A stretch of 40,757 nt of DNA, from assembly GCA_025201805.1 (NCBI GenBank), contig MU619320.1, positions 1 through 40,757 on the forward strand, given 5' to 3'. Both the position numbers and the translations under genes were made by a program. The DNA is from Parasitella parasitica NRRL 2501. Its lineage: Eukaryota; Fungi; Mucoromycota. The notes below the pieces were generated by a model. It made no database searches. It saw only the letters and a list, made by a program, of their open reading frames with translations, and was not told the DNA's origin. Shown one piece after another: positions 18,483 to 22,339 of this stretch; the stretch's first letter is position 1; each line of letters starts with the position of its first letter.

Positions 18483-18916
18483 ATGGTAAGGAAACACGAG
18501 AGACTGAGTAATTAGCATCGATACACACAAACGGATGATTAGATGGATGAGATGATTGAGCCGACCTTTTTTTTTTTTTTATTGTAGCCCAAGCAGGTTC
18601 TGGACATCAAGAACTTCCTCGAAATCACTCGTAGAAAGGACGCAAGCTGTAAGAGCTAAACACTATACACACATTGCAATGTAATATTGACTTGTACATT
18701 CACGCAGCTGCTCGTGTCAAGAAGAACGGTGAGCAATACAAGTTCAAGGTCAGATGTTCTCGTTACTTGTACACTCTCGTTGTCAACGATCGTCAAAAGG
18801 CTTTAAAGCTCAAGCAATCTCTTCCTCCTGGTACGTGTATTTCAATTTAGTTTTGCTGGGTTGCTTTATTGATATTTTTGTAATGTGCCTTAGCTCTCAG
18901 TGTCCAAGAACTCTAA
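18483..18916 (+). CDS. RPL38: 60S ribosomal protein L38, 4 exons (absent from ORF track)
   Basis: ATG-only first coding exon 18483-18485, then [68 protein letters not shown]. Confidence 0.96.
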
Positions 18917-19174
18917 GTTGCTTGAATCTTTTCATCTTGTTCACTCGTTTCAACCCTTTTCTTTTTCACAATAAAAGGCTTTGAATCGACATTATCTGGA
19001 TTTTATATGCTTTGGATTAAGGAAGAGCTCACTGATGACATTCTACACCATGATTCATGCATTCTTGAGTGTCTGTTTGACGGTAGCCACCCAGTCACTT
19101 TTTTTTTTTTTCTTTTTTTTTTTCTATGTGTATAAACGTTCTTTAATCAATCACTTTCACATCCATTTCTTCAT

Positions 19175-19571
19175 ATGTCAGATATACAAAGAATAGTTCT
19201 AAGCAAGAGAGTAGGATGGCATTTGGGTTTGATTTAGCACTGAGATTTGACGTGAGTTTATAGATAAATGAATCCAAAGTGCTCAACGCCGAGCTGTCTC
19301 ACTTAAAACCTACCACCGTAAGTAAGATCTGTGTTTGTGATATGGGAAATACCAGAATTTCTGCTAGGCTCTGTATGAACGCCAAGTACCCTCATCAAAT
19401 ATCTTTTTCCTGGCCAAAGACAATGAGGCTGTGAAGTCCAAGAGTTTAAGTAAATGCGTTATTATTGAGTGAGGATTATCACTGACTGAATTTTTGATTC
19501 AAGCTTTTCAGAAAGAACTAGAAAAGCAAATGTCGCTTTTTCAAGTGCCAAATTCAGAAAATTCGAAATAA
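19175..19571 (+). CDS. ASDURF: ASDURF-like (ASNSD1 uORF protein) beta-prefoldin-like microprotein, 79 aa, 4 exons
   Basis: Exons 19175-19210, 19264-19317, 19368-19449, 19504-19571 (240 nt, GT..AG introns) give MSDIQRIVLSKRINESKVLNAELSHLKPTTALYERQVPSSNIFFLAKDNEAVKSKSLTFQKELEKQMSLFQVPNSENSK*. The ELSxLK...Y...SNIFFLA pattern matches human ASDURF as recalled. Confidence 0.8.
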
Positions 19572-19631
19572 AACCCCACCTACGCAGTTTACCTTTGTAT
19601 TTGAATCTGTTTCTTACAATTTCCTGTTTTC

Positions 19632-20578
19632 ATGGCATCATTACCAGACCCTCTTGCCACTGCTAGTGGGCCAATTTCTGCTTACATGAGCGGCCACAGC
19701 AGCAAGTATTCTCCCGGCGTAGGGTAATTTTATGATGTATTCATCTTTTACAATAGGCGCCAACCTGGCTTATGTCAAATACTTTGCAAAGAAACAAGAC
19801 GCTGTTAGTGCCACCTTCAAGAGCCTCAATTCGCAAGGTTTCCTCGTCGCTTACAAAAAGGCAGATGGCTCTGAACATGAAGCTTTTATAGAATACAACA
19901 CCCCAATTTCGAGGCGCGAAGATGTAAGACCTGTGTTGGAAGCCATGGCAAAGGAAGCAGAGGCAGCACTGGGCATGGTATGTTATTCACGTCGTATTCA
20001 AGTCGGACGACTCATTTGATTAAATGACCATGTTCTAGCCAAGTTCACTTGATGGGCCTCCCCCCTTTCATGCATTAATGAAAGCTGCCGAAATTGAAGA
20101 GGCTCAAAAAGCCGAAATGAATAACCTACAGGAGGACAAAGACGCTGAAGCATCTGCAGCTATTGCTTCGGCTGCCATTGGAGATATTTTTGCGTCAAAT
20201 TCAGCACCGTCAGTCCCATTAGATGTATTTTATCCAGCAGATAGATTTTGGCAAACTGCTATTGCTGTCGGATTAGGCGTCAACGCTTTATTGGGCTACG
20301 CTTCTGACGAGTTTCTTTCTAGGCTTTTCCCATCATTTGTTGCATCATTTCGAAATTACTTAACGCCTCAGTTGATCCAATCTATATTCAATTGGGCAGC
20401 TGCTGTACATGCAGTTGAAGGACTCGTTGCCTTGGGTATTTGTTTAAAAAGAGGATGGTACAGCCCTGTAAATATCCTTAAATGGACAGTGAGCACTACA
20501 TTGTACGGAGGAGCGTCCATGATAAAATTACTCGGCCATGGAAACAAGGTAAAACGGGCGCGTACGAAGACGGATTGA
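19632..20578 (+). CDS. DUF2470-like N-terminal domain + TMEM254-like membrane domain protein, 3 exons
   Basis: MASLPDPLATASGPISAYMSGHS/SANLAYVKYFAK...REDVRPVLEAMAKEAEAALG (DUF2470-like); C-terminal VHAVEGLVALGICLKRG...KWTVSTTLYGGASM (TMEM254-like). First intron 19702-19756 is GC-AG. Confidence 0.75.
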
Positions 20579-21628: not shown

Positions 21629-22339
21629 CGTATTTTCGCTGGCTATAATCCTCATTGGAGCGCCATCTCTGATGTAGGTTGTCAACATCTTTCTATNNNN
21701 NNNNNNNNNNNNNNNNNNNNNNNNNNNNNNNNNNNNNNNNNNNNNNNNNNNNNNNNNNNNNNNNNNNNNNNNNNNNNNNNNNNNNNNNNNNNNNNNNNNN
21801 NNNNNNNNNNNNNNNNNNNNNNNNNNNNNNNNNNNNNNNNNNNNNNNNNNNNNNNNNNNNNNNNNNNNNNNNNNNNNNNNNNNNNNNNNNNNNNNNNNNN
21901 NNNNNNNNNNNNNNNNNNNNNNNNNNNNNNNNNNNNNNNNNNNNNNNNNNNNNNNNNNNNNNNNNNNNNNNNNNNNNNNNNNNNNNNNNNNNNNNNNNNN
22001 NNNNNNNNNNNNNNNNNNNNNNNNNNNNNNNNNNNNNNNNNNNNNNNNNNNNNNNNNNNNNNNNNNNNNNNNNNNNNNNNNNNNNNNNNNNNNNNNNNNN
22101 NNNNNNNNNNNNNNNNNNNNNNNNNNNNNNNNNNNNNNNNNNNNNNNNNNNNNNNNNNNNNNNNNNNNNNNNNNNNNNNNNNNNNNNNNNNNNNNNNNNN
22201 NNNNNNNNNNNNNNNNNNNNNNNNNNNNNNNNNNNNNNNNNNNNNNNNNNNNNNNNNNNNNNNNNNNNNNNCGTATTTTCGCTGGCTATAATCCTCATTG
22301 AAGCGCCATCTCTGATGTAGGTTGTCAACATCTTTCTAT
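21629..22339. repeat. 68-bp direct duplication flanking a 575-N scaffold gap
   Basis: 21629-21696 and 22272-22339 are identical except one base (ttggag vs ttgaag). Confidence 0.9.

Follow-up and report, generated by a model that had tools for sequence, protein, structure and literature searches.

The question raised by contig MU619320.1 of Parasitella parasitica NRRL 2501 is whether four short exons, picked out from the letters alone within the stretch of 40757 nucleotides analysed here (the window), belong to a real gene, and whether the product of this gene is a fungal member of the ASDURF family of small beta-prefoldin-like subunits. In human, ASDURF has been described as one of four beta subunits of a complex with URI1, UXT, PDRG1, PFDN2 and PFDN6, and this prefoldin-like complex forms, with R2TP, the PAQosome (PMC9406135, PMC11009110). 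The reviews record ASDURF, UXT and PDRG1 in mammals and Arabidopsis and report them as absent in yeast (bioRxiv 10.1101/2023.12.13.571423). The evidence assembled below leads to the conclusion that the Parasitella gene is very probably an ordinary single-copy, four-exon ASDURF orthologue of the Mucorales, that goes back to the last common eukaryotic ancestor.

Exon-Intron Structure and Conservation in Mucorales

The four exons splice in frame into 240 nt, in which 79 codons precede the stop, through three GT..AG introns (Table 1); the chain proposed in the sequence-only reading has therewith been borne out, and it is conserved in the relatives. The acceptor of intron 3 is an AAG, a less common type, the frame of this acceptor, which opens exon 4 at 19504, being fixed by the orthologues; a competing CAG at 19511, 8 nt further on, was discarded, since it would break the frame and is not conserved. 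The TAA stop is part of an AATAAA (19567-19572), and this AATAAA closes a block of about 28 nt (window 19545-19572; L001:3903-3930) that is conserved between Parasitella and Mucor. The block is non-coding in Mucor, while the Parasitella frame enters it: some 30 nt that include the ancestral stop are absent from Parasitella, so that exon 4 of Parasitella is 11 codons longer than that of Mucor. In Pilobolus the ASDURF frame terminates on the same last nine bases of the block. The block may act as a signal for the 3' end or as a promoter element of the gene that follows.

Table 1. ASDURF of Parasitella parasitica and its neighbours, with positions counted from the first letter of the window
Feature	Position	Strand	Description
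RPL38 (ribosomal protein L38e)	18483..18916	+	Pfam PF01781, E 1.7e-20; ends 258 nt upstream of ASDURF
ASDURF exon 1	19175..19210	+	36 nt; ATG at 19175; 12 codons; first helix (predicted) begins
ASDURF intron 1	19211..19263	+	53 nt, GT..AG, phase 0; position and phase as in fish ASDURF
ASDURF exon 2	19264..19317	+	54 nt, 18 codons; remainder of first helix (predicted)
ASDURF intron 2	19318..19367	+	50 nt, GT..AG, phase 0; position and phase as in fish ASDURF
ASDURF exon 3	19368..19449	+	82 nt, 27 codons + 1 nt; beta-hairpin (predicted) with SNIFFLA motif, second helix begins
ASDURF intron 3	19450..19503	+	54 nt, GT..AAG, phase 1; position and phase as in fish ASDURF
ASDURF exon 4	19504..19571	+	68 nt, ends with TAA; second helix (predicted) ends
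Spacer from ASDURF to the DUF2470-TMEM254 start codon	19572..19631	+	60 nt
DUF2470 + TMEM254 gene	19632..20578	+	276 aa, KAI8639686.1; Pfam PF10615 + PF14934

The region upstream of the DUF2470 gene in the relatives served as the comparison DNA. Mucor ambiguus, Benjaminiella, Mycotypha and Pilobolus carry the same four exons there, and Phycomyces has these exons as well; exons 2 and 3 measure 54 and 82 nt in each, and exon 1, with its ATG and phase-0 donor, has 12 codons in four other genera and 10 codons in Phycomyces. The conservation of intron positions, suggested earlier as a check, thus holds in five other genera of Mucorales for the exons and phases alike. An in-frame GT..AG chain by itself is cheap by chance, whereas the Parasitella chain is a conserved one. 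Between Parasitella and M. ambiguus the differences on codon positions 1, 2 and 3 number 13, 5 and 31, respectively, and exons 1-3 carry 23 synonymous versus 9 non-synonymous codon changes; judged by this codon pattern, the locus is a real gene under purifying selection. It is single-copy in the genome. Moreover, a search with the exon-3 profile led to a 74-aa ASDURF protein encoded on four intron-free Logan contigs from the RNA of a close relative, by which all three junctions are confirmed in that relative and the spliced form is seen to start at the exon-1 ATG.

Identification as ASDURF

The exons of the window were searched one by one, and natural full-length proteins of the relatives (P0074, P0083 and others) were used for the whole-protein tests. 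Against the Pfam family PF21975 (ASNSD1-SEP), with the cut-off of 27 bits, five natural orthologues (P0083, P0085, P0086, P0087 and P0088) score above it, at 27.4-32 bits, and P0074 just below it, at 26.3 bits; of seven more distant proteins from Mucorales, six have PF21975 as their best Pfam family. A profile built from Mucorales only retrieves the Mucorales orthologues and then vertebrate ASDURF (best E 5e-8), its named or Pfam-labelled matches outside Mucorales being all vertebrate ASDURF, with no canonical prefoldin retrieved by this search. The profile-versus-profile alignment by hhalign gave a probability of 98.6% (E 1.2e-15, 64 columns), and the exon-3 alignment one of 95%. In the reciprocal search with a vertebrate-only ASDURF profile, exon 3 of the window came out as the best of 2611 open segments (E 6.7e-4), the exons of PFD1/2/4/6 standing behind it at E 0.6 or worse. 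The Atlas neighbours of ASDURF are ASNSD1-SEP and plant prefoldin-like clusters. Single window exons, which are too short alone, matched no prefoldin family in Pfam, and the ASDURF exons went undetected when the whole genome was searched in six frames with PF21975 or the vertebrate profile, likely because of their shortness; the Atlas with exon 3 alone, the PDB sequence searches and the metagenome scans were blank or uninformative.

The gene structure is the strongest independent test of this identity. The ASDURF exons of the fish Denticeps measure 78, 54, 76 and 41 nt, and all three introns interrupt the same aligned codons in the same phases in Parasitella and Denticeps. For human, the comparison was made with the exon coordinates quoted in the exon table of PMC13303939, no human sequence being used, and the sizes of 105/54/76/71 nt give the same phases as in Parasitella. 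Exon 3 is of 82 nt in Mucorales versus 76 nt in vertebrates, the 6-nt difference corresponding to two gaps of the protein alignment.

The AlphaFold model of the orthologue P0074 (pLDDT 78) has helices at residues 3-24 and 49-72 and strands at 33-36 and 43-46. When this model was submitted to Foldseek, ranks 1-8 were all occupied by beta-prefoldin chains (probability up to 0.99, TM 0.58-0.72), with E-values of 0.1-0.7, that is, about 0.1 or worse, as is expected for so small a fold; a wide structural search returned generic helical hairpins only, which are not specific. The two helices and the single beta-hairpin are accordingly predicted to make a beta-prefoldin fold. The ASDURF-like identity put forward in the sequence-only reading is therefore supported from four sides, namely the family profile, the reciprocal profile search, the shared introns and the predicted fold, the product being a beta-prefoldin-like subunit.

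Neighbouring Genes and the Transcription Unit

ASDURF is placed between two genes of the same strand. An AATAAA near 18970 follows RPL38, and the last exon of the DUF2470-TMEM254 gene is 100% identical to the P. parasitica protein P0001. The first intron of the latter gene (19702-19756) is an apparent GC-AG intron with the donor GCAAGT, the junction being required by the annotated P0001; M. ambiguus, Mycotypha and Pilobolus have a GT donor there. Farther downstream, at about 21700-22290 of the window, there is a run of N of ~600 bases, either a gap or a withheld part of the sequence.

In this tightly packed genome, ASDURF most likely forms a transcription unit by itself rather than an upstream ORF. 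On the opposite view, ASDURF and DUF2470-TMEM254 would share a bicistronic mRNA in five genera (Mucor, Parasitella, Mycotypha, Benjaminiella and Pilobolus), with ASDURF as the upstream ORF. This would be a second case, independent of the vertebrate one with ASNSD1; ASDURF would then be a recurrent upstream-ORF gene, and polycistronic transcripts would be indicated in these fungi. The shortness of the spacer (60 nt in Parasitella, 54-188 nt in about five or six relatives) speaks for such an mRNA, as do two RNA contigs (L025 and L026; SRR14532551 and SRR14532555) that each span both genes, ASDURF and DUF2470-TMEM254, in spliced form. However, an AATAAA is present in every spacer, at or after the ASDURF stop; the contigs of two other RNA libraries break 7 and 43 nt past that stop; and in all four RNA contigs ASDURF is joined as well to a different upstream gene, of the OSBP family. 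In RNA contigs of Lichtheimia an unrelated gene is joined to DUF2470 across 215 nt, so that joins of this kind look like a general property of short-read contigs from dense genomes, and a further RNA contig has its start 48 nt upstream of the DUF2470 ATG. The linkage of ASDURF and DUF2470 is, furthermore, broken in Choanephora, where the gene after ASDURF is on the opposite strand, in Phycomyces, where no gene was called in the 3 kb downstream of ASDURF, and in Lichtheimia. Since short-read contigs can merge close neighbours, the bicistronic arrangement is considered unlikely.

A direct link to ASNSD1 was rejected: ASNSD1 is located on contig C57 and ASDURF on contig C84, and the latter is not an upstream ORF of the ASNSD1 mRNA. 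Bicistrony with ASNSD1 is not a defining property of the ASDURF family, since in Arabidopsis the orthologue is recognised as an independent gene. In SRR6965961 and SRR6965957 (L008 and L009), intron-free contigs were observed with a 321-aa gene and DUF2470-TMEM254 in one piece. The two- or three-gene same-strand contigs of Mucorales represent either polycistronic transcripts or merged neighbours; a literature search for polycistronic mRNA in Mucoromycota returned no paper.

Candidate Partners in a Prefoldin-like Module

The genome encodes PFD1, PFD2, PFD4, PFD6, PFD3 and PFD5 by separate genes. URI1 is present as an alpha-prefoldin domain and DUF3835 at one locus, and a fourth alpha-type prefoldin gene is found, which we take to be UXT-like by elimination. 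An RPAP3_C domain (G000:C5:352409-352681, L029; E 4e-24) and a PIH1 gene occur in the genome as well. The yeast Tah1 is short and lacks the RPAP3 C-terminal domain, and the R2TP of Parasitella looks more like the animal form. PDRG1 was not found in the genome search with PF01920, TIGR02338 and the PFD4 exon, a search insensitive on short exons in which few first-look candidates were scored; the blank means little, because ASDURF, which has a Pfam family of its own, was missed by the same search. Among the partner genes named for checking in the sequence-only reading, URI1 and, by elimination, a UXT-like gene have thus been located and PDRG1 has not, so the module is not complete on the evidence.

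We infer, by analogy with the known complexes, that the Parasitella protein takes the ASDURF position in a prefoldin-like hexamer of fungal subunits. On the pattern of the human and Arabidopsis complexes, the ASDURF hairpin would join the beta-barrel of a six-subunit complex of URI1, UXT, PFD2, PFD6, PDRG1 and ASDURF, and the two helices would make up one of its short tentacles. The complex may dock on R2TP (RUVBL1/2, RPAP3 and PIH1D1) and, when docked, would help Hsp90 to assemble RNA polymerases, snoRNPs/snRNPs and PIKK complexes.

It is rather improbable that the orthologue acts outside a complete module, for instance replacing PFD1 in an alternative prefoldin, with PDRG1 lost. Such an arrangement would account for the missing PDRG1, and a substitution for PFDN1 in alternative complexes has been suggested for the animal ASDURF (bioRxiv 10.1101/2023.12.13.571423); nevertheless, the loss of PDRG1 is read from an insensitive search, URI1 and a UXT-like gene are present, and the human ASDURF was recovered by DIP-MS only with PFDL and PAQosome subunits (PMC11009110).

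Annotation and Distribution in Fungi

About 13 Mucorales orthologues of 63-78 aa are predicted in NCBI as standalone genes without a name, in M. lusitanicus, M. fragilis, M. flavus, Blakeslea, Choanephora, Cokeromyces, Rhizopus, Rhizomucor, Dichotomocladium, Cunninghamella, Circinella, Phycomyces and Absidia. Several carry PF21975, and their labels are hypothetical or uncharacterised, with one 'Prefoldin subunit 6'. Faulty models of the gene are those of M. ambiguus (the fusion with RPL38 considered below), Benjaminiella, M. saturninus and one Rhizopus assembly; for Mycotypha and Pilobolus no model was called. In Parasitella it is probably unannotated, since the database searches returned the DUF2470 neighbour and no Parasitella ASDURF protein. 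The expectation that annotation pipelines miss this gene is consequently right for Mycotypha, Pilobolus and probably Parasitella, with four more cases of wrong models, and wrong for the standalone predictions. As a side observation, the DUF2470 models P0038 and P0035 (M. fragilis and one M. circinelloides) have N-terminal extensions through the post-ASDURF spacer, which are probably wrong choices of the start.

The RPL38 gene stands directly upstream of ASDURF in Phycomyces, Mucor (M. ambiguus), Mycotypha and Parasitella, an adjacency that constitutes an old microsynteny. In M. ambiguus (GCA_000950595) the NCBI model P0085 joins RPL38 to exons 2-4 of ASDURF in a 129-aa '60S ribosomal protein L38', by which the ASDURF exons would be the tail of an alternatively spliced RPL38-ASDURF fusion; the upstream position of RPL38 in the four genera fits with this, and the window has an AG at 19195-19196 whose phase would suit the RPL38 donor at 18831. 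The fusion is nonetheless highly improbable and was rejected. Its model skips the conserved exon 1, which is kept with its own ATG in six of six genera, and contains a linker found in no other full-length protein; the AG at 19195-19196 is not conserved; RPL38 carries a separate stop and AATAAA; the spliced form in the RNA contigs begins at the exon-1 ATG; and in Choanephora, Pilobolus and the species of the RNA contigs the gene upstream of ASDURF is not RPL38.

The probability is negligible that the locus is a chance splice chain, which is refuted by the conserved exons and the synonymous-biased codon pattern, or a divergent copy of the canonical PFD1/2/4/6, for which only the Prefoldin_2 scores of some orthologues could be cited (E 0.0002-0.035; 14.5-21.7 bits, below the cut-off of 27.6 bits), the four canonical beta subunits being all present elsewhere in the genome, PFD1 as a separate gene, and both profiles and introns pointing to ASDURF and not to a PFD1 paralogue.

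An ASDURF orthologue is thereby shown for Mucorales. Profile searches returned no matches from other fungal groups, these searches being too weak to show absence, and the literature search returned no paper on a fungal ASDURF or on the unnamed Mucorales proteins. The broader claim that early-diverging fungi keep the module stands for Mucorales only, and for a module that is incomplete on the evidence for lack of a PDRG1 match. Its designation as animal-type goes too far: in Arabidopsis, ASDURF, UXT and PDRG1 belong to a complex verified by AP-MS (bioRxiv 10.1101/2023.12.13.571423), from which it follows that the module is ancestral to eukaryotes and was lost in yeast.

Evolutionary Meaning

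The plant orthologue implies that ASDURF was present in the ancestor of fungi, and its retention in Mucorales is to be expected. The surprise to specialists is accordingly low, this being an expected ancient gene with relatives already in the databases. The reviews take yeast, with only URI/Bud27, as the fungal case, and this gap in the distribution is filled by the Mucorales, where ASDURF, URI1 and a UXT-like gene are retained together with an RPAP3 that has an animal-like C-terminal domain. The three shared introns show the 'upstream ORF' of vertebrates to be not a new ORF but an old gene placed before ASNSD1, in agreement with the model in PMC13303939. The identification corrects several gene models, and it offers a haploid microbial model, Mucor lusitanicus, for a module of mostly unknown function. 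Mucor lusitanicus is genetically tractable.

Comparison with Known Systems

The canonical PFD1, PFD2, PFD4 and PFD6 have the helix-hairpin-helix fold in common with ASDURF, but they are longer (about 105-130 aa), and their identity to ASDURF in the structural matches is 13-20%. Much closer is the vertebrate ASDURF (Pfam PF21975, ASNSD1-SEP; Cloutier et al. 2020, as cited in PMC8567396), with which the Mucorales proteins share about 35-45% identity, the EL-x-x-L and SNIFFLA motifs, the small size, the positions and phases of all three introns, and the predicted beta-prefoldin fold. Unlike the vertebrate gene, which in fish is 10 nt away from ASNSD1, that of Parasitella is not upstream of ASNSD1, and its product has a shorter N-terminus and two extra residues in exon 3; the 11-residue C-terminal extension is peculiar to Parasitella. 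The Arabidopsis ASDURF (At1g49245), a gene of its own whose product co-purifies with URI, UXT, PDRG1, PFD2 and PFD6 (bioRxiv 10.1101/2023.12.13.571423; PMC10893143), is, by its published description, a non-animal orthologue like the Mucorales gene, and in the Atlas a Streptophyta Prefoldin_2/ASNSD1-SEP cluster is among the nearest to the Mucorales ASDURF.
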